Below the pieces are notes generated by a model. That model was not told the DNA's origin, made no database searches, and saw only the letters and a list, made by a program, of their open reading frames with translations. The translations under genes and the position numbers were made by a program. This document shows, one piece after another, positions 5,993 to 52,820 of a DNA stretch of 64,000 nucleotides. Source of the DNA: Neoechinorhynchus agilis (taxonomy: Eukaryota; Animalia; Acanthocephala); the NCBI GenBank assembly GCA_051530055.1, contig CM121341.1, forward strand, positions 12,130,784 through 12,194,783. Direction: 5' to 3'. The number at the start of each line of letters is the position of its first letter. Position 1 is the first letter of the stretch.

Positions 5993-6409
5993 ATGCGATT
6001 CCTTCTATTCACCTGCGCATCCTCGCTTTTCCTGCTGAGCATTGTGCAAGCGATGGGGACCTTCAATTCCCCGTCCCATGCCCATGCAAGAGCCAAACGT
6101 GGAATATTAAGCAGCATCTTTGGAAGGCGAGCATGGAATTCCGATCGATATTATGATAGTCATAGTTCAGATATGTACTACGATTACGGTCGTCCAGTAG
6201 GCGGCTACCGTCCAGAACCTGCTTACGGTCCCGCGTATTACGAAGCTCAAAACAATGCAGGGTTCAGGGAACCTCAACCGCCTATTAATCAACAACCACA
6301 AGCGGTAGAATGTATTGACCGGGATCCGCGGTGCGCTTCAATCGTTGGATACTGCTATCAATATACTGTGATCGACTCATGCCCAAGAACATGTGGAGCC
6401 TGTGCATAA
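5993..6409 (+). CDS. Secreted precursor with furin/dibasic sites and a C-terminal ShKT domain
   Basis: Hydrophobic signal peptide (aa ~1-20), RAKR-GILSSIFG-RR, a Tyr/Pro-rich spacer, and terminal C-x6-C-x6-C-x8-C-x3-C-x2-C (CIDRDPRCASIVGYCYQYTVIDSCPRTCGAC). Intronless, with AATAAA ~45 nt downstream. Confidence 0.8.
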   Translation: MRFLLFTCASSLFLLSIVQAMGTFNSPSHAHARAKRGILSSIFGRRAWNSDRYYDSHSSDMYYDYGRPVGGYRPEPAYGPAYYEAQNNAGFREPQPPINQQPQAVECIDRDPRCASIVGYCYQYTVIDSCPRTCGACA

Positions 6410-7260: not shown

Positions 7261-7944
7261 AGGATTATCGGCCGTTCGCAAATTTCTGTTTCAAACTTCA
7301 TCAGATCACTGATTTCAGTTGGCATCCCAAAAGTCATGCATCGAGGTTCCCATCATCCTTGGGTGATGAAACTGGCAATTTATGCTGCGATACAGAGGAC
7401 AGAACTAAAGGAGATCACGCGATTCCGGCCGCAGTGTTATTCAAACGAGAAAACATGAAAAGATTAGCGCTCGCGAAATCGATATGATGGACAAACGGTT
7501 CCCAGGATACAACATTTCAATTAGTTCACTAGAGACGTTCGAAAGCTGCTGAGACGATCGAAAAGTGCGCCTACACTTTGGTGATTCCTGACGAGAACTA
7601 AACATCATGAAACGCCGGAAGCACGTCCAGCCTTGGGCTTGTTGTGTACGAACCGGTTTAGTCCATTGACAAAAATGGCCGACAAGATTCGATTTGCACT
7701 TGAAGAAACGTGGCCCACGAGCAGGTGACAATCGCGGCATTATCTACATTGCGAAAACTTAGCTGCCTTCGCTTGAACATTTTACGAAGCGCGTTCACAA
7801 AGCACTGAATCCGGATGCAAAATCATGGCGACAGCATGGGCAATGCGCCACTCAGAGTTCCACAGCGACGGAGAAGTAAAACTCTCGACGCGAGCTGGAT
7901 TTTTGGCTAAGGACACTATGAAAATATCTACCGCCAAAGCACGA

Positions 7945-10900
7945 CTTATATCTGGGGCGATTGGAAGGGATGGTGTTTCCATAGACAGTGTGAACTAGAG
8001 TTCTAGACATAAGCTCGAAAAACCGCAGAACTGCCCAACAGCCTGGACGAACTTTCCGTTTCGATGTCGCTTTGGTTAACACAAACTTCACATCTTCACG
8101 GGCTTTTGTAGATTCCTGAGGAAGCCATAAGACGGCCAAAGGTTTAGATTAAAGATTTTTCTCTGTTTTTGTCCTTACCATTCCGCCCAAGTGTCCATTT
8201 AAAACCAAAAGTTGGTCAATCGTGCAGCTGGCAAATCGAGTAGAATTTCACAAGATTATGAACATGCGGTTGATCAAACTGATCTTTAATATTTTCGACG
8301 CGAGTTAGATTTGTGGCCAAGAACTCGATGGAACTATCGCCGAGGTACTACTTATATCCTGGACGGTTTGAAGGGATGGTGTTTCCATAGACAATGCCAA
8401 CTAGAGTTCTAGACATAAGCTCGATAAAACCGCAGAACTGCTCAACAGCTTGAACGAACTTTCCGTTTCGATGTCGCTTGGTTAACACAAACTTCACATC
8501 TTCACGGGCTTTTGTAGATTCCTGAGGAAACCATAAGACGGCCAAAGGTTTAGATTAAAGATTTTTCTTTATCTTTGCCCTTACCATTCCGCCCAAGTGT
8601 CCATTTGAAACCAAAAGTTGATCAATCTTGCTACTAGCAAATCGAGTAGAATTTCACAAGATTATGAACATGCGGTTGATCAAACTGATCTTTAATATTT
8701 TCGACGCTAGTTAGATTTGTGGCCAAGAACTCGATGGAACTATCGCCGAGGTACTACTTATATATCTGGGCGGTTGGAAGGGATGGTGTTTCCATAGACA
8801 ATGCGAACTAGAGTTCTAGACATAAGCTCGATAAAACCGCAGAACTGCTCAACAACTTGGACGAACTTTCCGTTTCGATGTCGCTTGTTTAACACAAACT
8901 TCACATCTTCACGGGCTTTTGTAGATTCCTGAGGAAACCATAAAACGGTCAAAGGATGAGATTGAAGGTTTTTCTTTATTTTTGTCCCTACCATTCCGCC
9001 CAAGTGTCCATTTAAAACCAAAAGTTGGTCAATCGTGCAGCTGGCAAATCGAGTAGAATTCCACGAGATTATGAACATGCGGTTGATCAAACTGATCTTT
9101 AATATTTTCGACGCGAGTTAGATTTGTGGCCAAGAACTCGATGGAACTATCGCCGAGGTACTACTTAAATCCTGGACGGTTTGAAGGGAACAATGTCAAC
9201 TAGAGTTCTAGACATAAGCTCGATAAAACCGCAGAACTGCTCAACAGCTTGGACGAACTTTCCGTTTCGATGTCGCTTTGGTTAAAACAAACTTCACATC
9301 TTCACGGGCTTTTGTAGATTCCTGAGGAAGCCATAAGACGGCCAAAGGTTGAGTTTGGAGATTTTTCTTTATCTTTGCCCTTACCATTCCGCCCAAGTGT
9401 CCATTTGAAACCAAAAGTTGATCAATCTTGCTACTAGGAAATCGAGTAGAATTTCCCAAGATTATGAACATGCGGTTGATCAAACTGATCTTTAATATTT
9501 TCGACGCGAGTTAGATTTGTGTCCAAGAACTCGATGGAACTATCGCCGAGGTACTACTTATATATCTGGGCGGTTGGAAGGGATGGTGTTTCCATAGACA
9601 ATGCGAACTAGAGTTCTAGACATAAGCTCGATAAAACCGCAGAACTGCTCAACAGCTTGAAAGAACTTTCCGTTTCGATGTCGCTTGGTTAACACCGACT
9701 TAACGGGCCTTTGTAGATTCCTAAGGAAGCATTAAGACGGCCATAGGTCGAGGATGAAGATTTTTCTTTATCTTTGCCCTTACCATTCCGCCCAAGTGTC
9801 CATTTAAAACCAAAAGTTGGTCAATCGTGCAGCTGGCGAATCGAGTAGAATTCCACAAGATTATGAACATGCGGTTGATCAAACTGATCTTTAATATTTT
9901 CGACGCGAGTTAGATTTGTGGCCAAGAACTCGATGGAACTATCGCCGAGGTACTACTTATATCCTGGACGGTTTGAAGGGATGGTGTTTCCATAGACAAT
10001 GCCAACTAGAGTTCTAGACATAAGCTCGATAAAACCGCAGAACTGCTCAACAGCCTGGACGAACTTTCCGTTTCGATGTCGCTTTGGTTAACACAAACTT
10101 CACATCTTCACGGGCTTTTGTAGATTCCTGAGGAAACCATAAAACGGCCAAAGGATGAGTTTGGAGATTTTTCTTTATCTTTGCCCTTACCATTCCGCCC
10201 AAGTGTCCATTTGAAACCAAAAGTTGATCAATCTTGCTACTAGCAAATCGAGTAGAATTTCACAAGAATATGAACATGCGGTTGATCAAACTGACCTTTA
10301 ATATTTTCGACGCGAGTTAGATTTGTGGCCAAGAACTCGATGGAACTATCGCCGAGGTACTACTTATATATCTGGGCGGTTGGAAGGGATGGTGTTTCCA
10401 TAGACAATGCGAACTAGAGTTCTAGACATAAGCTCGATAAAACCGCAGAACTGCTCAACAACTTGGACGAACTTTCCGTTTCGATGTCGCTTGTTTAACA
10501 CAAACTTCACATCTTCACGGGCTTTTGTAGATTCCTGAGGAAACCATAAGACGGCCAAAGGTTGAGTTTGGAGATTTTTCTTTATCTTTGCCCTTACCAT
10601 TCCGCCCAAGTGTCCATTTGAAACCAAAAGTTGATCAATCTTGCTACTAGAAAATCGAGTAGAATTTCCCAAGATTATGAACATACGGTTGATCAAACTG
10701 ATCTTTAATATTTTCGACGCGAGTTAGATTTGTGGCCAAGAACTCGATGGAACTATCGTCGAGGTACTACTTATATATCTGGGCGGTTGGAAGGGATGGT
10801 GTTTCCATAGACAATGCGAACTAGAGTTCTAGACACAAGCTCGATAAAACCGCAGAACTGCTCAACAGCCTGGACGTACTTTCCGTTTCGATGTCGCTTG

Positions 10901-12235
10901 GTTAACACAAACCTCACATCTTCACGGGCTTTAGTAGATTCCTGAGGAAACCATAAAACGGCCAAAGGATGAGTTTGGAGATTTTTCTTTATCTTTGCCC
11001 TTACCATTCCGCCCAAGTGTCCATTTGAAACCAAAAGTTGATCAATCTTGCTACTAGCAAATCGAGTAGAATTTCACAAGAATATGAACATGCGGTTGAT
11101 CAAACTGATCTTTAATATTTTCGACGCGAGTTAGATTTGTGGCCAAGAACTCGATGGAACTATCGCCGAGGTACTACTTATATATCTGGGCGGTTGGAAG
11201 GGATGGTGTTTCCATAGACAATGCGAACTAGAGTTCTAGACATAAGCTCGATAAAACCGCAGAACTGCTCAACAACTTGGACGAACTTTCCGTTTCGATG
11301 TCGCTTGTTCAACACAAACTTCACATCTTCACGTGCTTTTGTAGATTCCTGAGGAAACCATAAAACGGCCAAAGGATGAGATTGAAGGTTTTTTTTATTT
11401 TTGTCCTTACCATTCCGCCCAAGTGCCCATTTAAAACCAAAAGTTGATCAATCTTGCAGCTGGCAAATCGAGTAGAATTTCACAAGATTATGAACATGCG
11501 GTTGATCAAACTGATCTTTAATATTTTCGACGCGAGTTAGATTTGTGGCCAAGAACTCGATGGAACTATCGCCGAGGTACTACTTATATATCTGGGCGGT
11601 TGGAAGGGATGGTGTTTCCATAGACAATGCGAACTAGAGTACTAGACATAAGCTCGATAAAACCGCAGAACTGCTATACAGCCTGGACGAACTTTCCGTT
11701 TCGATGTCGCTTGGTTAACACCGACTTAACGGGCCTTTGTAGATTCCTAAGGAAGCATTAAGACGGCCATAGGTCGAGGATGAAGATTTTTCTTTATCTT
11801 TGCCCTTACCATTCCGCCCAAGTGTCCATTTAATACCAAAAGTTGGTCAATCGTGCAGCTGGCAAATCGAGTAGAATTTCACAAGATCATGAACATGCGG
11901 TTGATCAAACTGATCTTTAATATTTTCGACGCGAGTTTGATTTGTGGCCAAGAACTCGATGGAACTATCGCCGAGGTACTACTTATATCCTGGACGGTTT
12001 GAAGGGATGGTGTTTCCATAGACAATGCCAACTAGAGTTCTAGACATAAGCTCGATAAAACCGCAGAACTGCTCAACAACTTGGACGAACTTTCCGTTTC
12101 GATGTCGCTTTGGTTAACACAAACTTCACATCTTCACGGGCTTTTGTCGATTCCTGAGGAAACCATAAGACGGCCAAAGGTTGAGATTAAAGATTTTACG
12201 TTATTTTTGTCCTTGCCATTCCACCCAAGTGTCTA
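7945..12235. repeat. Tandem array, ~392-407-bp unit, ~10.5 copies
   Basis: 'gaagggatggtgtttccatagaca' or a variant recurs at roughly 7965, 8370, 8777, 9183, 9577, 9975, 10383, 10790, 11197, 11604 and 12000. Confidence 0.97.
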
Positions 12236-12379
12236 TTTAAAAGAAAAATTTAAAAATAAATAACATTATAGCTAGTGTAGCCGGAGAAAACGGTGGTTAG
12301 TCACTTGTTTCTTATCGTGCACTGAACTTTGTGTAGAGGTATTGCGTACTAAAAACTTTATCTTAAGCCATAAGATCAT

Positions 12380-14569: not shown

Positions 14570-15035
14570 CGCGCCACGAAATGCTGACGAAATTTCGCCG
14601 GAAGAATCTAAAAACCGACAAGAGCTAGTTTTGCCGCAGAACGCAATAACTAAAAACCTCTCACGCAATTTCTGCGAAAGAGGCTAAAAACGCAGAAAAT
14701 GACGAAAACTACGTTCATTTTCCAGCTGAACATATCAAGCAAAGCAAATCCTGACGCAATCCCAGACGAAGAACCTAATAACCGAGATAGTGACGAAAAT
14801 GAGGTTCATTTTCCCGCTGAACACATCAAATAAAACCAACCTCTGACGCAATTTCTGCGAAAGAATCTAATAAACGAGAAAAAATACGAAAATAATATTC
14901 ATTTTGCCGCTTAACATATCAACCAAAACAAACCTCTGACACAATCTCTTGTGAAGAATCTAATAACCGAGTAAATGACGAAAATAACGTTTATTTTCCC
15001 GCTTAACATATCAACCAAAACAAACCTCTCGCTAA
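14570..15035. repeat. Diverged left arm of the ~92-bp satellite
   Basis: About 5 degenerate copies of 'gacgaaaataacgttcattttcccgctgaacatatcaaccaaaacaaacctctgacgcaat'. Confidence 0.85.
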
Positions 15036-15039
15036 GAAT

Positions 15040-16217
15040 CGCTCCGAAGCTATACTACGAGAAGCTCAGAGCCGTACGTGATTCTTAAGTGTGATTTTCG
15101 GAACGCCTTTAACCCTCTTAATAGAAAAACCATGTTCTGCCTAATTAGGGATCATGCCCCAGAAGCCTTCCAGTATTTTCTCAATGCCTAAGGGACCGCG
15201 ACTCCTTTGCTTTTCGAAGACCACCTCATTTGGTTTGAAAGGGGAGTGCAACAAGGAGATCCTCTCGGTCCAATCGCATTCTCCCTAACAGTAAATCCAA
15301 TAGTGCAATCTCTCCATTCCAGCTTCAACGCTTTGTACTTGGAATACCCAACGCTCGGAGGTGATCCCTCCGTTGCACTGCGCGATTTGCAGACGCTGAT
15401 TAGGGAGACCTCGAGAATGGGCATTGATCTCAATGCTGGAAAGTGTGAGATTTTAGTATTAAATATTGAAGACGCCGCCAAAAGAAAGGAGCTAATGGAT
15501 CGGTTCGGGCCGTAGCTCCAGGTCTGAAACTCGTGACTCCAGAGCAACTCAGCCTCCTTGGTAGTTGCGTCTTTGATTCAAATGTGGAAGCTGAGGTCGG
15601 CCGTATCATACCAAACCTTTCGTTGCTGTGCGATAGAATGAGCGCTCTCTCGGTTCACGAAGTGTTATTTCTGATAAAGAACTAGCCCTTTATCCCCAAA
15701 TTGTTATATAAGGACCGCACAGCAATATGCTTCAAACATAAGGAAGGATTGGCTAAGCTCGACGACAAGGTGAAGGCTTGTCTCGAGCGTATTTTTAATG
15801 TCCAGCTCTCAGATGAGGCGTGGCGAAAAGCTTCAATGCCTGTGTCATCTCTGGGATTTGGCCTTCGGCTGCTAGTAGACCTTGCCAGCCTCTCTTGGAT
15901 CGTATGAGGGGAGTCAACCGATAGCGAAGATAATTCTGAGGGGAAAGTTTTGTCTTGACCAAGACTTTGTGGTGGCAGTCGAAGAATGGTGCAAGCAGAC
16001 AGGCGCAAACCATGTTCCCGTGAATCGCCTTAGACAGTCGATCTGGGACAGACCTCTCGTCGCGAGAGCTCACAGCTCTCTACATTCAGGTTCTCGCGAT
16101 GGGGTCGTCCGAGCTAGATTGTTGGCAGTTTCGACACGAGAATCGGGAGCGTGGTTGGAGGCTGTTCCTTTAACATCTGTGGGAACTCTTCTCACTGATG
16201 AGGTAACGAGGATCGCA
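15040..16217 (+). mobile_element. Internal fragment of the CRE-like retrotransposon inserted in the satellite
   Basis: Near-identical to ~54700-55880 (CDFRNAFN, GVQQGDPLGP, ARLLAVSTRES), with stops and frameshifts. Both ends are truncated. Confidence 0.93.
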
Positions 16218-16219
16218 AA

Positions 16220-19200
16220 GATCTAGCAAACGAGAAAATGACGAAAATAGCGTTCATTTTCCCGCTAAACATATCAACCAAAACAAACCTCTGACGCAAT
16301 TTCTGTTTAGGAATCTAACAACCGAGTAAATGACGAAAATAACGTTCATTTTCCCGCTGAACATATCAACCAAAACAAACCTCTGGCGCAATCTCTGTTT
16401 AAGAATTTAATAAGCGAGAAAATGACGAAAATAACGTTCATTTTCCCGAAGAACATATCAACAAAAACAAACCCCTGACGCAATTTCCGTTTAAGATCTA
16501 ATAAACGAGAAAATGACGAAAATAACGTTCATTTTCCCGCTTAACATATCCACAAAAACAAACCTCGGACGCAATCTCTTTTTTAGATCTAATAAACGAG
16601 AAAAATACGAAAATAACGTTCATTTTCCCGATGAACGTATCAACAAAAACAAACCTCTGACGCAATTTCTGTTTAAGATCTAATGAACGAGAAAATGACG
16701 AAAATAACGTTCATTTTCCCGCTTAACATATCAACCAAAACACACCTCTGACGCAATCTCTGTTTAAGATCAAATAAACGAGAAAATCCCGAAAACAACG
16801 TTCATTTTCCCGCTGAACATATCAACCAAAACAAACCACTGACGCAATCGCTGCTTAAGAACTTAAGGAACCGAGAAAATGACGGAAATAGCGTTCACTT
16901 TCACGCCGTACATATCAACCAAAACAAACATCTGACGCAATCTCTGTTTAAGAATCTAATAACCAAGAAAATGACGAAAATAACGTTCATTTTCCCGCTG
17001 AACATTTCAACCAAAACAAACATCTTGCGATGAATCACATAACCGTGAAAATGACGGAAATAACGTTCATTTTGCCGCTGAACATATCAACCAAAACAAA
17101 CCATTGACGCAATCTCTCTTTAAGAATTTAATGACCGAGAAAATAACGAAAACAGCGTTCATTTCCCGCTGAACATACAAACCAAAACAAACCACTGAAA
17201 CAATCTCTATTCAAGAATCTAATAACCGAGAAAATGACGGACATCTTCAAGCTGAACATATCGACCAAAAAAAACCTCCCACGCAATCTCTGTTTGAGAA
17301 TCTAATAACCGAGAGGCTGAACATATCAACCAAAACAAACCTTTGACGCAATCTCTGTTTTAGAATTTAATGACCGAGAAAATGACGAAAATAGCGTTCA
17401 TCTTCCCGTTGAACATATCAACCAAAACAAACCTCTGACGCAATTTCTGTTTAGGAATCTAACAACCGAGAAAATGACGAAAATAACGTTCATTTTCCCG
17501 CTGCACATATCAATCAAAACAAACTTCTGACGCAATTTCTGTTTAGGAATCTAACAACCGAGAAAATGACGAAAATAACGTTCATTTTTCCGCTTAACAT
17601 ATCAACAAAAACAAACCCCTGACGCAATTTCCGTTTAAGATCTAATAAACGAGAAAAATACGAAAATAACGTTCATTTTCCCGATGAACATATCAACAAA
17701 AACAAACCTCTGACGCAATTTCTGTTTACGATTTAATGAACGAGAAAATGACGAAAATAACGTTCATTTTCCCGCTTAACATATCAACCAAAACACACCT
17801 CTGACGCAATCTCTGTTTAAGATAAAATAAACGAGAAAATCACGAAAACAACGTTCATTTTCCCGCTGAACATATCAACCAAAACAAACCACTGACGCAA
17901 TCGCTGCTTAAGAACTTAACGAACCGAGAAAATGACGGAAATAGCGTTCACTTTCACGCCGTACATATCAACCAAAACAAACATCTGACGCAATCTCTGT
18001 TTAAGAATCTAATAACCAAGAAAATGACGAAAATAACGTTCATTTTCCCGCTGAACATTTCAACCAAAACGAACATCTTGCGATGAATCACATAACCGAG
18101 AAAATGACGGAAATAACGTTAATTTTGCCGCTGAACATATCAACCAAAACAAACCACTGACGCAATCTCTCTTTAAGAGTTTAATGACCGAGAAAATAAC
18201 GAAAACAGCGTTCATTTCCCGCTGAACATACAAACCAAAACAAACCACTGAAACAATCTCTATTCAAGAATCTAATAACCGAGAAAATGACGGACATCTT
18301 CAAGCTGAACATATCGACCAAAAAAACCTCCCACGCAATCTCTGTTTGAGAATCTAATAACCGAGAAAATGACACAAACAACGCAAATTTTCGGCTGAAC
18401 ATATCAACCAAAACAAACCTCTGACGCAATCTCTGATTTAGAATTTAATGACCGAGAAAATGACGAAAATAGCGTTCATCTTCCCGTTGAACATATCAAC
18501 CAAAACAAACCTCTGACGCAATTTCTGTTTAGGAATCTAACAACCGAGTAAATGACGAAAATAACGTTCATTTTCCGGCTGAACATATCAACCAAAACTA
18601 AACTCTGGCGCAATCTCTGTTTAAGAATCTAACAACCGAGTAAATGACGAAAATAACGTTCATTTTCCCGCTGAACGTATCAACGAAAACAAACATCAAA
18701 AGCAATCTCTGTTTAAGAATCTGATAACCGCGAAAATTACGAAAATAACGTTCATTTTCCCGCTGGACCTATCAATCAAAACAAACTTCTGACGCAATCT
18801 CTGTTTTAGAATTTAATGACCGAGAAAATGACGAAAATAGCGTTCATCTTCCCGTTGAACATATCAACCAAAACAAACCTCTGACGCAATTTCTGTTTAG
18901 GAATCTAACAACCGAGTAAATGACGAAAATAACGTTCATTTTCCCGCTGAACATATCAACCAAAACAAACTTCATTTTCCGGCTGAACATATCAACCAAA
19001 ACAAAATCCTGGCGTAATCTCTGTTTAAGAATCTAACAACCGAGTAAATGACGAAAATAACGTTCATTTTCCCGCTGAACGTATCAACGAAAACAAACAT
19101 CAAAAGCAATATTTGTTTAAGAATCTAATAACCGCGAAAATGACGAAAATAACGTTAATTTTCCCGCTGCACATATCAATCAAAACAAACTTCTGACGCA

Positions 19201-20945
19201 ATTTCTGTTTAGGAATCTAACAACCGAGAAAATGACGAAAATAACGTTCATTTTTCCGCTTAACATATCAACAAAAACAAACCCCTGACGCAATTTCCGT
19301 TTAAGATCTAATAAACGAGAAAAATACGAAAATAACGTTCATTTTCCCGATGAACATATCAACAAAAACAAACCTCTGGCGCAATTTCTGTTTACGATTT
19401 AATGAACGAGAAAATGACGAAAATAACGTTCATTTTCCCGCTTAACATATCAACCAAAACACACCTCTGACGCAATCTCTGTTTAAGATCAAATAAACGA
19501 GAAAATCACGAAAACAACGTTGATTTTCCCGCTGAACATATCAACCAAAACAAACCACTGACGCAATCGCTGCTTAAGAACTTAAGGAACCGAGAAAATG
19601 ACGGAAATAGCGTTCACTTTCACGCCGTACATATCAACCAAAACAAACATCTGACGCAATCTCTGTTTAAGAATCTAATAACCAAGAAAATGACGAAAAT
19701 AACGTTCATTTTCCCGCTGAACATTTCAACCAAAACGAACATCTTGCGATGAATCACATAACCGAGAAAATGACGGAAATAACGTTAATTTTGCCGCTGA
19801 ACATATCAACCAAAACAAACCACTGACGCAATCTCTCTTTAAATTTAATGACCGAGAAAATAACGAAAACAGCGTTCATTTCCCGCTGAACATACAAACC
19901 AAAACAAACCACTGACACAATCTCTATTCAAGAATCTAATAACCGAGAAAATGACGGACATCTTCAAGCTGAACATATCGACCAAAAAAAACCTCCCACG
20001 CAATCTCTGTTTGAGAATCTAATAACCGAGAAAATGACACAAACAACGCAAATTTTCGGCTGAACATATCAACCAAAACAAACCACTGGCGCAATCTCTC
20101 TTTAAGAATTTAATGACCGAGAAAATAACGAAAACAGCGTTCATTTCCCGCTGAACATACAAACCAAAACAAACCACTGACACAATCTCTATTCAAGAAT
20201 CTAATAACCGAAAAAATGACGGACATATTCAAGCTGAACATATCGACCAAAAAAAACCTCCCACGCAATCTCTGTTTGAGAATCTAATAACCGAGAAAAT
20301 GACACAAACAACGCAAATTTTAGGCTGAACATATCAACCAAAACAAACCTTTGACGCAATCTCTGTTTTAGAATTTAATGACCGAGAAAATGACGAAAAT
20401 AGCGTTCATCTTCCCGTTGAACATATCAACCAAAACAAACCTCTGACGCAGTCTTTGTTTAAGAATCTAATAACCGAGAAAAAACGAAAATAACGTTCAT
20501 TTTCCCGTGAACATATCAACAAAACAAAACTCTGGCGCAATCTCTATTTGGAAATCTAACAACCGAGTAAATGACGAAAATAACGTTCATTTTCCCGCTG
20601 AACATTTCAAAAAAACAAACCTCTGGCGCAATCTCTATTTGGAAATCTAACAAACGAGTAAATGACGAAAATAACGTTCATTTTCCCGCTGGACCTATCA
20701 ATCAAAACAAACTTCTGACGCAGTCTTTGTTTAAGAATCTAATAACCGAGAAAAAACGAAAATAACGTCCATTTTCCCGCTGAACAAATCAACCAAAAGA
20801 AACCTCTAGCGAAGAATCTAATTACCGAGAAAATGTCGAAAATAACGTTCATTTTCCAGCTGCACATTCGACCAAAACGAACCTCAAACGCAATATCGTT
20901 TTAAGAAACTAAAAACCGAAGAAATGACGAACTTATCTTGCATAT
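16220..20945. repeat. Satellite array, ~91-92-bp unit, ~50 copies, with higher-order structure
   Basis: 'cgagaaaatgacgaaaataacgttcattttcccgc' at 16231, 16323, 16415, 16506 and onward. Diagnostic variants recur at kb spacing. Confidence 0.97.
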
Positions 20946-21954: not shown

Positions 21955-22165
21955 CCTCGCGGTAGAATAAAAGAGAATGAAAATGACGTGTTTCAATTCG
22001 TTCATCCGTGTTTTTCAAATTATTTTACGTTTGTGCCATCAGCGGCGCGGTAGAATAAAAGAGAATGAAAATGACGTCATTCATTTTATTCGTCCGTATT
22101 TTTCAAATTATTTCACGTTTGCGCTATCAGCTGCGCGGGAGAATACAGAAGAATGAAAATGACAA
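21955..22165. repeat. Short tandem repeat, 88-bp unit, ~2.5 copies
   Basis: 'cgcgg..gaata.a..gaatgaaaatgac' at 21958, 22046 and 22134. Confidence 0.8.
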
Positions 22166-22516: not shown

Positions 22517-24298
22517 ATGACGAATTCATCCTCAGCTGGAACGATGCTATCGAATGCGTCATCATCATCCGTCAAAACCAAATCCAACCACTGTATCAAG
22601 TTACGAGGATTGCCGTGGTCATCGAGCAAAGAAGATATTCTTAGCTTCCTAGATGGTATGATACGCTATCCGAGGGGAGGTTGCTCGTGTGAATCACCCG
22701 GATGATTTGTTGTTTTATTTAATGTTTTTTCTTATCCTCAGTTTTATATGTGGTTCTTTTTTAAAAAGAAAAGTTTTCCTATTAGAAGTTTATTTAAACC
22801 TACACTCTGTACTGATAGGTTGTTCTGTTGTTAATGGTATCGAAGGTATTCATATGATCCCACGCAGTGGACCAACGCGGGGTGAAGCGTTTGTTGAGCT
22901 CGAAAGTCAGGCGGATGTTGAAACAGCTTTATCGAAACACCGCCAGCACATGGGCTCTCGTTACATTGAAGGTACTATTTTTTCGGTCCGTCGGTTCGAA
23001 ATTGATGGGTTTGTAGTGTTTACGTCGTCTGCAACCGAGATGGCCCATATGACCAACCCTAAGGGACCCATGGCGTGGCGGGATCCCGTACTGCGACTAC
23101 GCGGTATCCCGTACTATTGCACTAAGCAGGATATATACGATTTCTTCTCGGGTGAGTCTTTGTTAGGACATCCGTCTGTAGTTTTTCAATCTCTGGCGTA
23201 AAGGACTCCAAATAGCCCACAACGGTGTTTATATATCAATGGACGAGGCAGGGAATGCGAGTGGGGTTGCGTTTGTCGCGTTTGTGAAGATGGATACAGC
23301 CTACAAGGCCTTAGAAAAACACCGTCAAATGATTGGGCACAGGTACGCAATCGCGATTTTTTGAAAAAGCTTTTGATTGTCCTGATTTTACCGCTATTCG
23401 GGCGCTAGATACGTTGAGTTGTTTCAATCGTCGTACGCAGAGGCTCGGGCTCGTATGGTCGATGATATGGAGGCCAACGGATATGGGGACCCAAGGCGTC
23501 TAATGACGGCTAAATTCACGGCAGCGGCGGCTATGGGTGTTTTGCCACAAGCGGCTGCTCCTGCACCTCTCATGGGTATGCCAACTTCGGCTTCGGCGAT
23601 GGTAGGGGCTGGGTTGCCCGGAATTACAGCAGCGGCGGGGATTAGTGGATTGATGCCGCCGCCACCACCGGTGGCTACGGCTCAATCGGTCGGCGGAGGA
23701 GGAGGAGGGTCAGGTCCTCATAACGTCGTAATGACCGGTCTTCCATATAAGACAAGTGAAGAGGAGCTCAACGATTTCTTCAGACCATTGAAACCAATTC
23801 GAGTGCAAATTCGGTTCGATGGACGAGGACGACCAACTGGGGAAGCCATCGCGGAATTCAAATCCCACGACGAAGCGTGTGAGGCGATGAAGTACGACAA
23901 ACGGTACATTGGTCAACGGTACGTCGATCTAACTCTCGAATCATCGAGACCGGACGTATCCAATAGCGCAGCGACGGCTGCAGCTCTTCTTTCAGCTTCC
24001 AATCAGGTGGCGGCTGCAGTCATTGGTGAAGGAGGTGATGGCGGTCCCGGAGGAGATTATTCATCCTTGGACACATCGAAGGCATATGATATGTACCGTG
24101 GACCTCCACCGCCTCATGGACAAATGCAAGGCGGAGCGCCACCGAATCTCACACAGCCTGCACCTGGATCGATGCCGCCCCCACCGCCGAATTATCCGAA
24201 TTGGGGAGGTGAGAGTGTGTGTATACGTCCATTGACAGTTTTTCACTACATCGAAAAATCGCCGTTTAGCAATGCCGGGTTATGATAGATGGTATTAG
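22517..24298 (+). CDS. hnRNP F/H-family (glorund-like) protein with three qRRMs, multi-exon
   Basis: 'CIKLRGLPWSSSKEDILSFL', 'GEAFVELES...HMGSRYIE', 'VLRLRGIPYYCTKQDIYDFF', 'GVAFVAF...HRQMIGH|RYVELF', 'VVMTGLPYKTSEEELNDFF...YIGQRYVDL'. Predicted last intron 24209-24269 (GT..AG) gives a terminal exon AMPGYDRWY*. Confidence 0.88.
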
Positions 24299-27200
24299 CG
24301 AGTGAAAGACAAACGAGCGTGTGAGCGAGTGTCGTGGAATAAACAACGCAGATGGTAGATTTGAGTTGTATAAGAGAACTCCTTGAGCTGTTAACGGTTA
24401 GTCTTCATTCGAGCCACGATTAGAGACAACCTCTATCAAATTGTACGGGTTGTTAACGTTTAATCTTCAATCTCTAAGATCGACGAGAGTAAAAGTATTT
24501 TTCAGCGTTTTGAAAAAATCAAAAATACTTGAGTTATTCAAAGAATTAAGAGACTAAAAAAATTACATTTTGTCAGAAACGGCAGGGATGCGCCGAATGG
24601 CATTTCGCTGCTGCGTTTGATAATTTCCTGTTATCTTTAAAATTGTTTGTACTATAAAGATTTACATAATTGCGCTACTAAACGTATTGCCGTCAAAAAA
24701 TTCCCTCCCCTCAGTAACTCTAAGCATATTATTTTTGGGAGCTTCATGAGAATTTGGATAGTATTAGCGAGTGAAAGACAAACGAGCGTGTGAGCGAGTG
24801 TCGTTGAATAAACAACGCAGGTGGTAGATTTGAGTTGTATAAGAGAACTCCTTGAGCTGTTAACGGTTAGTCTTCATTCGAGCTACGATTAGAGACAACC
24901 TCTATCAAATTGTACGGGTTGTTAACGTTTAATCTTCAATCTCTAAGATCGACGAGAGTAAAAGTATTTTTAAGCGTTTTGAAAAAACCAAAAATACTTG
25001 AGTTATTCAAAGAATTAAGAGACTAAAAAAATTACATTTTGTCAGAAACGGCAGGGATGCGCCGAATGGCATTTCGTTGCTGCGTTTGATAATTTCCTGT
25101 TATCTTTAAAATTGTTTGTACTATAAAGATTTACATAATTGCGCAACTAAACGTATTGCCGTCAAAAAATCTCTTCCTCGGTAACTTTAAACATATTGTT
25201 TTCGGGAGCTTCATGAGAATTTGGATGGTATTAGCGAGTGAAAGACAAACGAGCGTGTGAGCGAGTGTCGTTGAATAAACAACGCAGATGGTAGATTTGA
25301 GTTGTATAAGAGAACTCCTTGAGCTGTTAACGGTTAGTCTTCATTCGAGCCACGATTAGAGACAACCTCTATCAAATTGTACGGGTTGTTAACGTTTAAT
25401 CTTCAATCTCTAAGATCGACGAGAGTAAAAGTATTTTTCAGCGTTTTGAAAAAATCAAAAATACTTGAGTTATTCAAAGAATTAAGAGACTAAAAAAATT
25501 ACATTTTGTCAGAAACGGCAGGGATGCGCCGAATGGCATTTCGCTGCTGTGTTTGATAATTTCCTGTTATCTTTAAAATTGTTTGTACTATAAAGATTTA
25601 CATAATTGCGCTACTAAACGTATTGCCGTCAAAAAATCTCTCCCTCAGTAACTTTAAACATATTGTTTTCGGGAGCTTCATGAGAATTTGTATAGTATTA
25701 GCGAGTGAAAGACAAACGAGCATGTGAGCGAGTGTCGTTGAATAAACAACGCAGATGGTAGATTTGAGTTGTATAAGAGAACTCCTTGAGCTGTTAACGG
25801 TTAGTCTTCATTCGAGCCACGATTAGAGACAACCTCTATCAAATTGTACGGGTTGTTAACGTTTAATCTTCAATCTCTAAGATCGACGAGAGTAAAAGTA
25901 TTTTTCAGCGTTTTGAAAAAATCAAAAATACTTGAGTTATTCAAAGAATTAAGAGACTAAAAAAATTACATTTTGTCAGAAACGGCAGGGATGCGCCGAA
26001 TGGCATTTCGCTGCTGCGTTTGATAATTTCCTGTTATCTTTAAAATTGTTTGTACTATAAAGATTTACATAATTGCGCTACTAAACGTATTGCCGTCAAA
26101 AAATCTCTCCCTCAGTAACTTTAAACATATTGTTTTCGGGAGCTTCATGAGAATTTGGATGGTATTAACGAGTGAAAGACAAACGAGCGTGTGAGCGAGT
26201 GTCGTTGAATAAACAACGCAGATGGTAGATTTGAGTTGTATAAGAGAACTCCTTGAGCTGTTAACGGTTAGTCTTCATTCGAGCTGAGATTAGAGACAAC
26301 CTCTATCAAATTGTACGGGTTGTTAACGTTTAATCTTCAATCTCTAAGATCGACGAGAGTAAAAGTATTTTTCAGCGTTTTGAAAAAACCAAAAATACTT
26401 GAGTTATTCAAAGAATTAAGAGACTAAAAAAATTACATTTTGTCAGAAACGGGAGGGATGCGCCGAATGGCATTTCGCTGCTGCGTTTGATAATTTCCTG
26501 TTATCTTTAAAATTGTTTGTACTATAAAGATTTACATAATTGCGCTACTAAACGTATTGTCGTCAAAAAATCTCTCCCTCAGTAACTTTAAACATATTGT
26601 TTTCGGGAGCTTCATGAGAATTTGTATAGTATTAGCGAGTGAAAGACAAACGAGCATGTGAGCGAGTGTCGTTGAATAAACAACGCAGATGGTAGATTTG
26701 AGTTGTATAAGAGAACTCCTTGAGCTGTTAACGGTTAGTCTTCATTCGAGCTAAGATTAGAGACAACCTCTATCAAATTGTACGGGTTGTTAACGTTTAA
26801 TCTTCAATCTCTAAGATCGACGAGAGTAAAAGTATTTTTCAACGTTTTGAAAAAACCAAAAATACTTGAGTTATTCAAAGAATTAAGAGACTAAAAAAAT
26901 TACATTTTGTCAGAAACGGGAGGGATGCGCCTAATGGCATTTCGCTGCTGCGTTTGATAATTTCCACTTATCTTTAAGATTGTTTGTACTATAAAGATTT
27001 ACATAATTGCGCTACTAAACGTATTGCCGTCAAAAAATCTCTCCCTCAGTAACTTTAAACATATTATTTTCGGGAGCTTCATGAGAATTTGGATGGTATT
27101 AGCGAGTGAAAGACAAACGAGCGTGTGAGCGAGTGTCGTTGAATAAACAACGCAGATGGTAGATTTGAGTTGTATAAGAGAACTCCTTGAGCTGTTAACG

Positions 27201-28485
27201 GTTAGTCTTCATTCGAGCTACGATTAGAGACAACCTCTATCAAATTGTACGGGTTGTTAACGTTTAATCTTCAATCTCTAAGATCGACGAGAGTAAAAGT
27301 ATTTTTAAGCGTTTTGAAAAAACCAAAAATACTTGAGTTATTCAAAGAATTAAGAGACTAAAAAAATTACATTTTGTCAGAAACGGCAGGGATGCGCCGA
27401 ATGGCATTTCGTTGCTGCGTTTGATAATTTCCTGTTATCTTTAAAATTGTTTGTACTATAAAGATTTACATAATTGCGCTACTAAACGTATTGCCGTCAA
27501 AAAATCTCTCCCTCAGTAACTTTAAACATATTATTTTCGGGAGCTTCATGAGAATTTGGATGGTATTAGCGAGTGAAAGACAAACGAGCGTGTGAGCGAG
27601 TGTCGTTGAATAAACAACGCAGATGGTAGATTTGAGTTGTATAAGAGAACTCCTTGAGCTGTTAACGGTTAGTCTTCATTCGAGCCACGATTAGAGACAA
27701 CCTCTATCAAATTGTACGGGTTGTTAACGTTTAATCTTCAATCTCTAAGATCGACGAGAGTAAAAGTATTTTTCAGCCTTTTGAAAAAACCGAAAATACT
27801 TGAGTTATTCAAAGAATTAAGAGACTAAAAAAATTACATTTTGTCAGAAACGGGAGGGATGCGCCGAATGGCATTTCGCTGCTGCGTTTGATAATTTCCT
27901 GTTATCTTTAAAATTGTTTGTACTATAAAGATTTACATAATTGCGCTACTAAACGTATTGTCGTCAAAAAATCTCTCCCTCAGTAACTTTAAACATATTG
28001 TTTTCGGGAGCTTCATGAGAATTTGTATAGTATTAGCGAGTGAAAGACAAACGAGCATGTGAGCGAGTGTCGTTGAATAAACAACGCAGATGGTAGATTT
28101 GAGTTGTATAAGAGAACTCCTTGAGCTGTTAACGGTTAGTCTTCATTCGAGCTACGATTAGAGACAACCTCTATCAAATTGTACGGGTTGTTAACGTTTA
28201 ATCTTCAATCTCGAAGATCGACGAGAGTAAAAGTATTTTTAAGCGTTTTGAAAAAATCAAAAATACTTGAGTTATTCAAAGAATTAAGAGACTAAAAAAT
28301 TACATTTTGTCAGAAACGGCAGGGATGCGCCGAATGGCATTTCGCTGCTGCGTTTGATAATTTCCTGTTATCTTTAAAATTGTTTGTACTATAAAGATTT
28401 ACATAATTCCGCTACTAAACGTATTGCCGTCAAAAAATCTCTCCCTTCGTAACTCTAAGCATATTATTTTCGGGAGCTTCATGAG
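24288..28485. repeat. Tandem array, 467-bp unit, 9 copies, highly homogeneous
   Basis: 'gtattagcgagtgaaagacaaacgag' at ~24292, 24761, 25228, 25695, 26162, 26628, 27096, 27563 and 28029. Confidence 0.98.
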
Positions 28486-28487
28486 GA

Positions 28488-28877
28488 TTATTCGTCTTCT
28501 TCCCAGATATCTTGGGCTTCATCCGCCAGCATTTCAGTTGGATATTCAGTGTCGTCGTCAAATTTGTAACCAGGAAAGGGTTCATTTCCGATTAAATGAT
28601 ACGGAGGTTTAAAGGGCATTCCTTGGTACATATCGAAATAGTTGAATATATAAATCGACATAGGCAAACATATTGAACCGATAGCGAGCATGAAATAGGC
28701 ATTTTTACGTTTCCGTCCCATATACTCATTCCATTTGTGAATCGGTCGAGGAATAAAGTCCATTGTAGCCTTGGCTGCTACCATTCTACGCCGAATCTCT
28801 TCGCGAGATGTATGGACCAGACGCTGAGATTTAAAGAGCAGAGACTGTACACTACTTTTAGTGGAACCAACCACCAT
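28488..28877 (-). CDS. Small single-pass membrane protein, probably mitochondrial (weak COX6A resemblance)
   Basis: Basic/Ser-rich N-terminus, TM segment 'YFMLAIGSICLPMSIYIFNYF', then 'PPYHLIGNEPFP' (compare COX6A 'YPHLRIRTKPFP') and an acidic tail. Intact 129-aa ORF. Confidence 0.55.
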   Translation of the reverse strand: MVVGSTKSSVQSLLFKSQRLVHTSREEIRRRMVAAKATMDFIPRPIHKWNEYMGRKRKNAYFMLAIGSICLPMSIYIFNYFDMYQGMPFKPPYHLIGNEPFPGYKFDDDTEYPTEMLADEAQDIWEEDE

Positions 28878-30429: not shown

Positions 30430-31590
30430 CACGCTGCATTTAGATTTAGTTCAATGCCCTCCTTATTCTCCGGTCTACAGTTTCAACCCTTTCGATCTCA
30501 TTTGGATCCGCTTCGTGCAAAAATATGGTATGTAACAATGCCTCCACTTTCCATAATGAAATTGTGGTTCCGGCAAAATTGGCCTTTGATATCTTCTCCA
30601 TTTCAACGCGTAGTCTCGATGAGCTCCCTAACGGCATTTTTAACTAAATATTCATGACAGCGAACTCGTTTAAGGAAAATGGATGTTTTTATAACACAAC
30701 CACAGAAAACGGGAAGATTGGTAACCGACAGACATTGTCTCCCTTCATCACAATGGCAACATTTAAGTATAAAATGGCCAGGATTAAGTCGCTTTTTGAT
30801 CGTGCCTACAACTACTGCTCCAACCTAGATTCACTCAATAATGAGTTACAGTTTCTTGGGCATATGCTCAAAGGAAAGGGCTACCCAATCTGTATGATAA
30901 GAAGAGCTAGTTGCAGGGTCTTCTATCGTAGGAAAACAGTGCGCCAGGAGTCGAAACGAAGGACCTTCGTAGGTGCACCATTCGACGATGATGTGCTGTT
31001 CACCGCAATTAACAATCTAATAATTAAAGCTGCGCCCAAAGACCTCAATTGTTGTATCTACACGAAGAAAACTAAACCACTAAGCTCCATTGCGGAGAAA
31101 CGAGATGAACATGAAAGCAAATGTGTGGTGTATAGAATTCCTTACACCGAATGCAGTAAATCCCATTTTGGCCAAACAAACAATTTGGAAAGAAAAATCA
31201 AATAACTGAAATATGCTCTAACCATTTTGAACAACAAGGTGTCGTGATGGATATCGACAATGCCACCATTTTGGCTCGAAGTGAATCCAAATGGGATCGC
31301 GTTACAATGGAAGCCATATTTATTCGCCAGATTGAAACAGTTGATGCGAGTAAGGCGGACTTTAAACTAAATCTAAATGCAGCGTGAATTTAACTATCCC
31401 AACGTGTGGATTTTAACCTCTCAATAAAGGCACAACATTTTGCCGAAATATCGCTTTTAATAAATTCCTTTAAATTTTACTCCATAAACAGGCCATCTAT
31501 TACTAACAAACAAACTGATGATGAACCCGACGAGGTTCGAAACGTCTTTATTAAATATTCATTTACCGGGTGTAGACCTAAACAATTATT
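30430..31590 (+). mobile_element. Degenerate Penelope-like element (RT C-terminus/thumb + GIY-YIG + pLTR)
   Basis: 'KMARIKSLFDRAYNYCSN...ELQFLGHMLKGKGYP', 'CVVYRIPYTECSKSHFGQT', and a terminal hammerhead motif. Confidence 0.85.
31509..31552 (+). ncRNA. Minimal type I hammerhead ribozyme motif
   Basis: aacaaa-CTGATGA-t-GAACC-cgacga-GGTTC-GAAA-CG-TC-tttatt. Canonical core, palindromic ACGU stem III, and one mismatch in stem I. Confidence 0.75.
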
Positions 31591-40799: not shown

Positions 40800-41645
40800 T
40801 TTGGGTCGAGGTTAAGCCCTCGCGCTTATGAAATGCTTATTCCAATGAAACAACTACAAAGATGTTCTACAGACTTATACGTTATGATTGTTCGGCAGCT
40901 TCCTTGATGGCCGCGACATTGCCGCGTTGGATTGCCGCGCTGATTCGCTGCAGCAGGAAGCTGCTGGAGCGCATGTCGCCGGTGGCATATTTCAACATCT
41001 TTCCCAGCCGTGAAAGGAAATAATCGGCTTCTTTTCCGAGGCATCCCAGTGTTTCCACCGCAATCGGGATGAAAATATATTGATGCCTACCGAGCGAGGA
41101 GTACTTATGCCGCTTCTTTTCCTCGCTGAAGCTGGCGACTGCTCCCGCTTTTGAGGTGGCATCCCGTAAGTGAGATGCTGCGAGCGTGTTGGGACAAGTA
41201 AAATCCAAAACCAGTATTTTCCCGGAGCACCGTGGGAGGAGAGTCGCTCCAGGGCGTTTACCGTCGTTCCGGGAAAGTCCGACTGGTTAGGGTCGAGCGG
41301 GAAAATCGGCCGTTGAGAGGGCTTCCTTGATTATGCGGTTGTCTGCTGAGTGCCGTGCGTGGCGAGCATTTGAACGTTTGCAGTCAAGGCCGTGAGTTCC
41401 CGACCTATTCACTGTCCCACCGCACCGACATGTATATGAGCCTGAGAATTCGATGCCCAACCGAAGTCCCACCGCGACGGTGATGGCTTGGTCATCCAGC
41501 CTCCTGCCAGCAGCCGCGATCGGGAAAGCCTTTAAGAAGTCGCTGGAGTGTGGAGCTGAGATTGCCAGGAGACGAGTTCTATCGGTTTGAGATGAACATG
41601 AGTTGAGAAGCTGCGGATAATACGCAGTGTGGAGCGATGACACGC
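40800..41645 (-). mobile_element. CRE-like retrotransposon 3' part (CCHC zinc finger + REL endonuclease)
   Basis: 'RTRLLAISAPHS', 'CRCG...HGLDC', 'DFTCPNTLA...KKRHKY...FIPIAVETLG...QRGNVAA'. Confidence 0.9.
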
Positions 41646-41654
41646 GTAATTATT

Positions 41655-42865
41655 CGCGGTTCCGTACCTCCTCCAGTCGCTCGTCTACTATGCGGTGCCA
41701 ACCTGATCGCTTTCACAAAAAAGGTGGAGGGGTTAGTCCGATTGCCGTGGGTTGTACCTTCCGTCGGTTGGCATCCAAAGTCGCGTGTCAGTTCGCCACC
41801 GGTCGATTGATCGATCAACTCTTGCCGGTTCAATTAGGAGTCGGAGTTCCTGCTGGAGCCGAGGCGGGTATCCATAAGGGAACGGCTATGGTCAAGCTTG
41901 ACATGGGGAACGTGTTCAATTCAATATGCCGCACCGCGATGACAGAGGTTGTCCGCCAGCACCTACCAGAAATCTACCAGTAGGTGTCCTTGTGCTACGA
42001 CCAGTCCAGCAAGCTGCTGTTCGGCGAGTTCCAGTTCGAATCAGCAGAGGGTGTTCAACAAGGTGATCCTCTAGGTCCTCTGCTGTTCGCACTGACGATC
42101 AATCATCTTGCCCACAGCTCTTCGTCAGATTTATCGATCTGGTACCTCGACGACTGTTGCATCGGAGGGGAGATCGACCAGCTCATCCGTGACATCAAAA
42201 ACATCTCCGAAATGGGTGCCGATATCGGACTATTCGTGAGAACGGACAAATGCGAAATAATTTCGGACGAGCAAGAGGATACATCGAGACTGCTCACCGT
42301 ACTACCCGGAGCAAAGACAACTGCAATCAACTCAGCTGACATTCTCGGGTCTCCAATCGGTAACCTGCCTAACCTGCAAACGTTCCTCACAAAAGCCATC
42401 GATCAATTGCGGCTCACTGCCTCCAGGCTCTTGTACATCGCGCGACACGACGCTCTGTTTATACTAGGACGATGTCTGTCGCTACCGAAGATTGCGTACC
42501 TTCTAAGGGCTTCTCCATGCTTCAAGTCAGTGCTCACAAGGGATTTCGACAACTGTGTTCGATCAATCCTGCCAGAAGTCCTTAACCCACGACTGTCCGA
42601 TACAGCATGGAAACAGGTGATCCTTCCCATTCGATTCGGCGGTCTTGGCATCCAGAGTGTCACCGAAGTAGCAATTCCTGCTTTTTCGTCATCGATTTCG
42701 GTCTCTTCAGACCTGGTGCTGAGAATCATCCCACCACACACTCTACTAGAGTCACATCCACCACCTCAACTGATTGAAGCGCACGCTCAATGGACATCAG
42801 TGTTCGGGCAGGTCGTTCCAACAGAAGCAAATTCCCAAAAATGTTGGACTTACGGGATTTGATCT
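41655..42865 (+). mobile_element. CRE-like retrotransposon RT part, inverted relative to 40800-41645
   Basis: 'PIAVGCTFRRLASK', 'QLGVGVPAGAEAGIH', 'GVQQGDPLGPLLFAL', 'WYLDD', 'LPIRFGGLG'. Confidence 0.92.
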
Positions 42866-51320: not shown

Positions 51321-52199
51321 ATTTTTCAATTTCATTTCAACCTTCCTCTTACATCTTCTTTGCATATCGTTCAAATTTATTTTTGATCTTACTTTTGAAT
51401 TCCGCTTTCCCCAAATTCTTTATGTTGATTCGAAAACTTTCTATATCGGTTCCTTCCATTTCCGCCTATATTTCTGCCACTCGGATTGCCTGAACAAATC
51501 TTGATTGAATCTCTTTTTCCATTGTTTTTCTGCTTATTTGATTGTATCAATCTGCTACTTCCAATAATCCAATAGAGAAGCCAATCGCGAGCAATATAAT
51601 TGGGGCCAATAATGTTGTTATTGTAATGCGTTCCCTCAAAACAACGAGTACAATTCTGCAGATTCAATTTTCATATAGTGGCTGATATTTTAGAACGTTG
51701 ACTTGGGAGAAAAATGAAAATAATGTTTAATCTGAAAATTTTATTTTGCATTCACGAAACATAAAAATCGTCCTAGCCAAAAATTATAATGTTTTTGGTG
51801 TTCATCGCTCTATTTTTTAATGTTCATTGTTGAGCGATGAACAAATATTTGGTTCCGTCTCGCTCGAATGATAATCGAGTCGATTTTCTATGAACGTCGT
51901 ATTGAGTGAAGCATTGCACTGTCCTTTTACCGTCGGTGTCAACAGAATCTCCAACGATGCAAATATTTAGGATATTGGGACTTTAATGGCGACGTTTCGG
52001 AAGTTGAAATTCCGACCCATAACAAGAAAATTGAGCTTATAGTGGTAGCAGTCCATAAAATTTCATGTATCCTTTGAATTTTTAGGTCACTTTTCCTGCT
52101 TTACTATTTCCAATGTTTTTAATCTCTGCGGTGGTTCTCTCTCTATTTTACTACTTCAACTATCGCAAAAGCATTAACTGAACGTCCAAAGTAGTATTT

Positions 52200-52800
52200 A
52201 TCCTCTTCGTCAATCGTTCCAACGTTTCGCTTACGAATTTCGTTTAATCTCGTTGATTGATGTTCCTTCTGTTCGTCGACTTAAAGCCTTCGCATTCATC
52301 GACTGGACGCCGTATTCCGTCTTTTTTGTCATTATCACAAGTTCCAGAACTTCTCGTCCGAATTTCGTTTAATCTGGGTGATTGATGTTCCTTCTATTCG
52401 TCAACTATAATCATTCCGAATTCATCAATTGGATGTCGTCGACCGTCTTTATCCTCGTCGTCAGCAGTTGCAGCTTCTCGCCTCCGAATTTCTTTTAATC
52501 TCTGTGAGCGATTTTCCTTCTCTTCGTCAACTTTAAGCGTTCCATGTCCATCAACATGACTTCGTCAATCGTCTTTATCCTCTTCATCAATCGTTCCAGC
52601 CCTTAGCTTCCGAATTCCCTTTAATCTCGATGAGTGATATTCCTTCTCTTCGTCGACTTAAAGCCTTCACTGTTCATCAACTGAACGTCTTCTACCGTCC
52701 TTTTTGTCTTTATCATAAGTTCCAGGACTTCTCTTCTGAACTTCCTTTAACCCTTCTCTTCGTCAACTTTAAGCGTTCCGAATTCATCAACTGGAAGTCA
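52200..52800. repeat. Degenerate ~125-bp tandem repeat (~5 copies)
   Basis: 'aatttc.tttaatct...ttccttct.ttcgtc.act' at ~52238, 52361, 52487 and 52612. Confidence 0.8.
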
Positions 52801-52820
52801 GGAACCACTATTATGTTATC

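Follow-up and report, generated by a model that had tools for sequence, protein, structure and literature searches.

A nine-copy, 467-bp tandem array bounded by the coding ends of two convergent genes in the acanthocephalan Neoechinorhynchus agilis

A window of 64,000 nucleotides (64 kb) from the genome of Neoechinorhynchus agilis (assembly GCA_051530055.1, contig CM121341.1, positions 12,130,784 to 12,194,783 of the forward strand; all coordinates below are those of the window) contains a tandem array of nine 467-bp units. The array fills the space between two convergent genes, an hnRNP F/H gene on the + strand to its left and a gene for a protein of 129 amino acids (aa) on the - strand to its right. 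We found that the array is real, that its two edges coincide with the coding ends of the two genes, and that its interior copies are more alike than the copies at its edges. We consider it likely that this is a locus-born, large-unit tandem array of the minisatellite or macrosatellite type, and not an inserted element. It is most likely a harmless structural quirk of a repeat-rich region and not a new kind of genetic element.

Structure and divergence of the array

Tandem Repeats Finder reported one array, at 24288-28489, with a period of 467, 9.0 copies, 97% matches, 0% indels, and a score of 7959. When unit 1 was used as a BLAST query against the whole window, nine head-to-tail copies were obtained, with identities of 96.1-100%, and beyond these only noise-level matches. 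The two programs agree with an earlier note on this DNA, made from the sequence alone, in which a unit of about 467 bp in nine tandem copies had been described. Unit 1 is 469 bp long, and unit 9, which is without the 2-nt junction 'TG', is 464 bp long. The array has a total length of 9 x 467 bp less this 2-nt 'TG', which makes a whole number of copies. No extra copy of the unit was found in the window or in 4 kb outside it, about 68 kb in total.

At the left edge, the similarity between flank and unit begins at GATGGTATTAG (24288-24298), which comprises the final codons of the hnRNP F/H gene and its TAG, exactly where the unit had been proposed to start. At the right edge, the similarity reaches 28489 and so includes two bases from the complement of the stop codon (TAA, 28488-28490) that ends the minus-strand 129-aa gene. 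The end of the array had previously been placed at 28485; its location beside the stop of the opposite gene stands, but the exact position differs slightly from the one found here. With edges at both coding ends, the unit is the entire interval between the stop codons, including a stop codon and the two predicted 3' ends, as had been suggested. Each of the eight internal junctions has the sequence ...CATGAGAATT-TG-GATGGTATTAG... or one close to it. The array passes without a break into its native flanks: unit 1 joins the hnRNP coding end, and at the other side unit 9 joins the TAA of the 129-aa gene.

In the alignment of the nine units, 23 columns vary by transition, 13 by transversion, and 5 by indels, and 14 variant sites are common to at least two units, including units that are not adjacent. 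The mean difference is 2.0% between interior units, 3.3% between unit 1 and the interior units, 3.8% between unit 9 and the interior units, and 4.3% between units 1 and 9. In alignment columns 433 and 437, units 1 and 9 have the same base and all seven interior units have another. In column 444, the base of units 1 and 9 is found among the interior units in units 6 and 7 only, and interior unit 2 also departs from the other interior units there. Divergent edge copies together with homogenised interior copies fit the classic signature of unequal exchange, and the pattern of the copies is more readily explained by such exchange than by misassembly of a single copy.

The 11-nt copied coding end recurs in the interior copies, and G>A or G>T changes are seen in it in five of the eight units other than unit 1. 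The copied TGG has become TAG in four of these eight, and in three of the four the first base shows a G>T change as well. Because this fragment of copied coding sequence varies freely, the interior copies are without coding constraint. Alternating states in columns 1, 4, and 32 hinted at a higher-order (dimer) unit of 934 bp, which we rejected on the pairwise distances.

Each of the nine units contains exactly one AATAAA on the + strand, at offset 51, and exactly one ATTAAA on the - strand, at offsets 177-172, with GT-rich sequence downstream of the predicted hexamer on each strand. Both signals named in the earlier note, AATAAA at ~24338 on the + strand and ATTAAA on the - strand, were thus located, one per strand in every unit. 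If these hexamers are native, the ancestral 3' untranslated regions (UTRs) would be about 65 nt long for hnRNP and about 310 nt long for the 129-aa gene, and a gap of about 80 nt would separate the predicted gene-proximal 3' ends, without overlap. The retention of the hexamers in all nine units argues neither way, as its chance is ~37% for 12 hexamer positions with 8% of the columns variable.

The unit contains a single inverted repeat, located within the predicted minus-strand 3' UTR (Table 1), and it has no terminal inverted repeats and no coding capacity. The fold of either strand is no better than that of shuffled sequence (z = -0.24 and -0.92). An Rfam search of the unit gave no matches at E<=1, ARAGORN found no tRNA genes in it, and an exact metagenome scan with a 27-nt piece of the unit gave no matches.

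The two flanking genes

The exon model that we made for the left-hand gene has six exons and five GT..AG introns and gives a product of 464 aa. The public gene call, when mapped to the window, occupies the same positions and gives the same product, which is a 100% match to a named N. agilis protein. Pfam detected RRM_1 in the product, and the precomputed domains are RRM_1 and RRM_11. The product matches hnRNP H/F from many animals, with E from ~1e-60 to 1e-68. Judged by these domains and matches, the left-hand gene is that of a typical hnRNP F/H family protein.

With the intron 24209-24269 removed, the hnRNP product ends ...NWGAMPGYDRWY*. The closest relative in the protein collection, P0003 (UPI00079DC825), with 63% identity along its full length, has the ending ...GWGVPGYDRWY and is aligned to the last residue. 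If the intron were retained, the reading would end ...GGESVCIRPL...SNAGL*, which has no similarity to P0003. The N. agilis annotation was made by BRAKER with RNA-seq (PMC12690905). The terminal exon is therefore well supported, since the RNA-seq-based call and the ending of P0003 agree and the unspliced end does not resemble that of P0003. The last intron and the ending ...GYDRWY* had been correctly predicted in the earlier note, as both recur in the public 464-aa call and the ending is kept in P0003. Furthermore, because the ...PGYDRWY ending is common to a protein of 63% identity, the hnRNP coding end predates the array.

The right-hand gene consists of a single exon, and our open reading frame (ORF) matches the public call exactly. 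The predicted protein is small, with one membrane pass, a presequence-like N-terminus, and an acidic tail. A Pfam scan of the 129-aa protein gave no match at E<=0.1, and a word-index search returned only the match to itself. An exhaustive HMMER search, however, found four small relatives, with E from 8e-13 to 4e-7, and each of the four clears the cut-off that Pfam sets for PF16020 ('Deltamethrin resistance', Deltameth_res, prag01-like). The motifs KAT.D..P, W.E, and PYHL.G..FPG are common to the 129-aa protein and its four relatives. The acidic tail of the 129-aa protein exceeds those of three of the four relatives by 15-20 residues, and that of the Pomphorhynchus laevis one by about 6. By transitive similarity only, the 129-aa protein appears to be a distant relative of prag01 / PF16020. 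In the annotation, the P. laevis homologue, P0122 (KAI0979778.1), forms the C-terminal part of a fusion of 428 aa with a ZIP zinc transporter; this fusion is probably two adjacent genes that were joined by the gene caller.

The hnRNP gene of P. laevis (L002) has very large introns and a C-terminus unlike that of N. agilis. Nothing similar to the 129-aa protein or to the 467-bp unit was found near the P. laevis hnRNP locus, and the prag01-like gene of this species lies on a different contig from its hnRNP gene. The synteny comparison with P. laevis is uninformative.

Proposed origin of the array and alternative explanations

What is the origin of the array? The unit originated by copying at this locus and was not imported, because its first 11 nt are conserved hnRNP coding sequence. 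The length of 9 x 467 bp minus 2 nt, in whole copies, is what would be predicted for in-place duplication of a unique local sequence and its subsequent expansion. In addition, the amplification of segments of several hundred bp is routine in this window, and a neutral origin is therefore the default reading.

In the ancestral state that we envisage, the two genes, hnRNP F/H on the + strand and the prag01-like one on the - strand, would have stood tail to tail, their stops separated by about 454 nt. This spacer would have carried AATAAA 40 nt past the TAG and, on the opposite strand, ATTAAA about 290 nt past the TAA, with predicted cleavage sites about 80 nt apart. N. agilis has a compact genome of 46.2 Mb, with 13,655 genes (PMC12690905), and a spacer of about 454 bp would be ordinary for it. 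The first event may have been one non-homologous tandem duplication of 467 bp, in which the duplicated segment would have extended from the last 3-4 hnRNP codons to the first bases of the stop-codon complement of the 129-aa gene. No microhomology was seen at the founder junction, just the 2-nt 'TG'. This 'TG' may be filler, or it may have been 'TA' (when read from 24286, TAGATGG) with one early A>G change.

Expansion to about nine copies would then have occurred by unequal sister-chromatid exchange or by replication slippage between the 467-bp copies, with homogenisation of the interior copies, from which the edge copies would have been left out. Throughout, unit 1 would stay joined to hnRNP and unit 9 to the 129-aa gene, and the native coding ends, the proximal 3' UTRs, and the first signals would be kept. 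Since both genes keep their native ends and first poly(A) signals, the functional effect is most likely near none, and given the intact proximal signals, the functional consequences of the array are probably small. The array would now space the genes 4.2 kb apart, compared with about 0.45 kb before, and a read-through transcript would meet up to eight more copies of the signal.

A number of points weigh against this proposal of a neutral, locus-born array. The evidence comes from a single N. agilis assembly made from pooled worms, and the count of nine copies may be a consensus or a haplotype mosaic of those worms. The check that the unit occurs at a single locus covered about 0.15% of the 46.2-Mb genome. 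Furthermore, both breakpoints are 0-13 nt from a stop codon, and the neutral model leaves this fit unexplained. Under uniform breakpoints, the double fit to stop codons has a rough probability of ~5e-6 per array, with the look-elsewhere effect ignored. This value was calculated from ~3,400 pairs of convergent genes, with a window of 13 nt on one side and a length tolerance of 5 nt for spacers spread across ~1 kb, and from 13,655 genes in 46.2 Mb. If the density of arrays everywhere equals that in this window, about 0.02 such cases are expected genome-wide. Selection is no obvious cause of the breakpoint fit, because duplications that reach into either coding region leave both genes intact. We record the fit as unexplained, and not as evidence of function. 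It might mean either that arrays are seeded preferentially at the termination zones of convergent genes, or that a two-way terminator has been selected as an insulator or as a source of small RNAs, a pair of explanations that we regard as distinctly improbable. In the case of seeding, breaks might, for example, arise where converging transcription or replication collide, in a compact and array-prone genome.

Could the array as a whole have a selected function? The repeated two-way terminator might act as a fail-safe insulator separating two genes whose expression is presumably high, it might provide long alternative 3' UTRs, or it might give rise to double-stranded RNA or small RNAs from read-through. 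Such a role would be in keeping with the presence of one AATAAA (+) and one ATTAAA (-) in each unit, and with breakpoints that bracket exactly the inter-stop interval, which is improbable for random breakpoints. However, 12 unchanged hexamer positions are expected by chance (~0.37), and the distal copies need never be reached because the native proximal signals are intact. Moreover, the interior copies vary freely, the copied coding fragment included, and the adjacent arrays of like size show that amplification here needs no function. We therefore consider a selected function to be unlikely. That the true locus has one or far fewer copies, inflated in assembly from noisy long reads or pooled haplotypes, also seems quite unlikely to us. 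Arrays of 97%-identical units are difficult to assemble, and the assembly was built with MaSuRCA as a hybrid, from Nanopore R9.4 reads (at least 5 kb long) of ~50 pooled worms together with Illumina and Hi-C data and a very small share of HiFi data, only 0.088 Gb (PMC12690905). However, the 36 substitution columns versus 5 indel columns are unlike the indel-rich errors of Nanopore reads. The 14 sites common to non-adjacent units, in a tree-like pattern with divergent edges, are hard to obtain from a single copy, and long reads filtered to at least 5 kb can span the 4.2 kb (PMC12690905), even though the exact number of copies may yet be in error or differ between worms.

Transposon fragments and satellites abound in the window, and a dispersed satellite or a transposon-derived repeat could have landed between the genes, with an incidental match to the gene ends. 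Candidates would be a miniature inverted-repeat transposable element (MITE), a Helitron, or the tail of a short interspersed element (SINE). This is very improbable, since a chance match of the first 11 nt of the unit to the conserved hnRNP end has a probability of ~4^-11, and the array has a whole copy number and ends exactly at the native flank. The lack of terminal inverted repeats and of coding capacity also argues against a transposon, as the unit has just one 10-nt internal inverted repeat, and no further copy was found in the ~68 kb searched, at the P. laevis locus, or in the metagenome scan. It is possible that an old small element lay within the ancestral spacer, which would leave the conclusion unchanged. 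Tandem genes for small non-coding RNAs, of the spliced-leader RNA, small nuclear RNA, or 5S type, could also fill a spacer, and such genes often occur in tandem, in units a few hundred bp long. At each junction there is indeed an Sm-site-like AATTTGG, though by a rough estimate about 0.2 per unit are expected by chance. This explanation is barely credible, however, as the unit gave no Rfam match at E<=1 and no tRNA, folds no better than shuffled sequence, and has ends that are set by two coding regions and not by an RNA gene. We thus return to in-place duplication and expansion as the likely origin, in which case the array is a tidy example of the birth of a tandem array from unique sequence, with the founder junction, native flanks, and divergent edges still readable.

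Related systems and other features of the window

Human D4Z4, DXZ4, and RS447 are locus-specific large-unit tandem repeats that grow by unequal exchange. The N. agilis array is like these in its head-to-tail units of hundreds of bp, its high identity, and its more divergent edge copies, but it is unlike them in that its unit is the exact non-coding interval of convergent genes plus a few bases of each. Copy-number variation is a usual hallmark of minisatellites and macrosatellites, and the 467-bp array could be a length-variable marker for N. agilis populations. Sub-repeats in the intergenic spacer of ribosomal DNA (rDNA) carry repeated terminators, as in the Sal-box T1-T10 of mouse and the spacer repeats of Xenopus. 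In both rDNA and N. agilis, tandem termination signals lie downstream of a gene, and a read-through polymerase would meet several of them. However, the rDNA elements are proven, protein-bound terminators for RNA polymerase I, whereas those in N. agilis are predicted polymerase II hexamers on both strands. The serial predicted poly(A) signals past one stop codon also resemble tandem alternative polyadenylation, in which the ordinary sites differ within a unique 3' UTR, whereas the predicted N. agilis sites are identical copies 467 nt apart.

The satellitome of Acanthocephalus has reportedly been described in one study. The N. agilis array shares with satellite and transposon-derived arrays its tandem organisation in an acanthocephalan genome, and the window also contains about 5 kb of a 91-92 bp satellite. 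By contrast, the 467-bp unit comes from local gene ends, has no other copy in the ~68 kb, and forms a short array of nine copies. In yeast 3' UTRs, short AT-rich tandem repeats coincide with clustered poly(A) signals, including between convergent genes, and an origin by slippage has been proposed (PMC4393290). Repeats and several poly(A) signals occur together in the common 3' region of convergent genes both there and here, but the repeats in yeast consist of (TA)n-type tracts 23-89 bp long (PMC4393290), while the N. agilis unit is a complex 467-bp sequence repeated over 4.2 kb. Our search of the literature turned up no account of this locus, nor of a comparable case in which the spacer between two stop codons has been amplified. 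If arrays throughout the genome begin preferentially at gene ends or between convergent genes, the birth of repeats would be tied to transcription termination. Likewise, if the distal copies serve as poly(A) sites or yield small RNAs, either the birth or the retention of repeats would be tied to termination. Were arrays indeed seeded at termination zones, the birth of a satellite would have been caught at a defined functional element.

Tandem arrays, including the 467-bp one, make up about 26% of the window (Table 1), and the array is less exceptional than the earlier note implied. In the BLAST comparison of the window, the 467-bp unit was unrelated to the other arrays. The 88-bp repeat upstream of hnRNP was unrelated to the 91-bp satellite.

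Table 1. Positions of the array, the flanking genes, and other features in the window
Feature	Position	Strand	Basis or remarks
Tandem array, 9 units x 467 bp	24288..28489	no strand	Tandem Repeats Finder, BLAST, alignment
Unit starts	24288, 24757, 25224, 25691, 26158, 26625, 27092, 27559, 28026		
Overlap of unit 1 with hnRNP coding end	24288..24298	+	GA TGG TAT TAG = (R) W Y stop
hnRNP F/H-type gene, 464 aa	22517..24298	+	Three RRM-type domains; exon model equals public gene call
hnRNP exons	22517-22655, 22819-22971, 23017-23151, 23204-23342, 23409-24208, 24270-24298	+	
Last hnRNP intron, 61 nt	24209..24269	+	GTGAGA...GTTTAG; before 29-nt terminal exon
AATAAA, predicted native hnRNP poly(A) signal	24338..24343	+	40 nt past TAG, GT-rich stretch after; use predicted
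ATTAAA, predicted native poly(A) signal of 129-aa gene	28197..28202	-	About 290 nt past TAA; use predicted
Sole inverted repeat in unit	24493..24530		10-nt arms AAGTATTTTT / AAAAATACTT, 18-nt gap; within predicted minus-strand 3' UTR
Single-exon 129-aa gene	28488..28877	-	ORF and public gene call on CM121341.1 (GCA_051530055.1), exact match
Array 261 bp x 6.7	4048-5785		
Array 407 bp x 10.6	7877-12242		91% matches
91-92 bp satellite, about 5 kb	14654-15030 and 16231-20931		
Repeat 88 bp x 2.3	21958-22163		Directly upstream of hnRNP start
126 bp and 66 bp repeats	52197-53167		
138-aa secreted-type protein	5993-6409	+	Between 261-bp and 407-bp arrays
Public 203-aa 'gene' and repeated 110-aa ORFs	10364-11430, 8758-9090	-	Inside 407-bp array
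Divergent histone H3-like gene, 135 aa	14048-14455	-	Pfam Histone
Reverse-transcriptase ORF, non-LTR element	54101-56500	+	Fragments at 41287-42862, 15188-16226
Perfect 21-bp coding repeat, 11 copies	54117-54354		PSTMPPP; at start of reverse-transcriptase ORF
ORFs that look GIY-YIG-type	30654-31205, 885-1235, 53492-53875, 57602-58186		By eye
LTR-retroelement pol with integrase	58718-61365		

The other convergent pair in the window, VAMP and POLE2, had been described as having only 66 bp between stops; this value was not reproduced, as the public coding calls give 350 bp (36719, 37070). The VAMP/POLE2 spacer contains AATAAA at 36960 (+) and at 36931-36926 (-), which suggests that the predicted 3' UTRs of the two genes may overlap by several tens of nt. 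There is no called gene in the 6.4 kb from the 129-aa gene to VAMP.

Many retroelement fragments are found in the window, together with the pol region of a long-terminal-repeat (LTR) retroelement and a long reverse-transcriptase ORF of a non-LTR element, which starts with the perfect 21-bp coding repeat. Among the matches listed for this reverse transcriptase, one protein is named SLACS, and the others are unnamed or uncharacterised reverse-transcriptase proteins. A search of the protein collection with the ORF (54440-56500) found no N. agilis protein, and therefore such elements are seemingly unannotated in this genome. The four ORFs with a GIY-YIG-type appearance suggest fragments of Penelope-like elements; a Pfam scan of one of them, 30654-31205, gave no match. 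The 203-aa gene call inside the 407-bp array, where 110-aa ORFs recur, is probably spurious and made on repeat sequence.

The divergent H3-like protein has an odd basic N-terminal tail and an altered loop-1 region, and its gene lies 175-200 bp from the 91-92 bp satellite. It may be a centromeric-type H3 variant. Finally, the 138-aa secreted-type protein has a cysteine-rich C-terminal motif, C..C......C......C..C..C, like that of a ShK domain.

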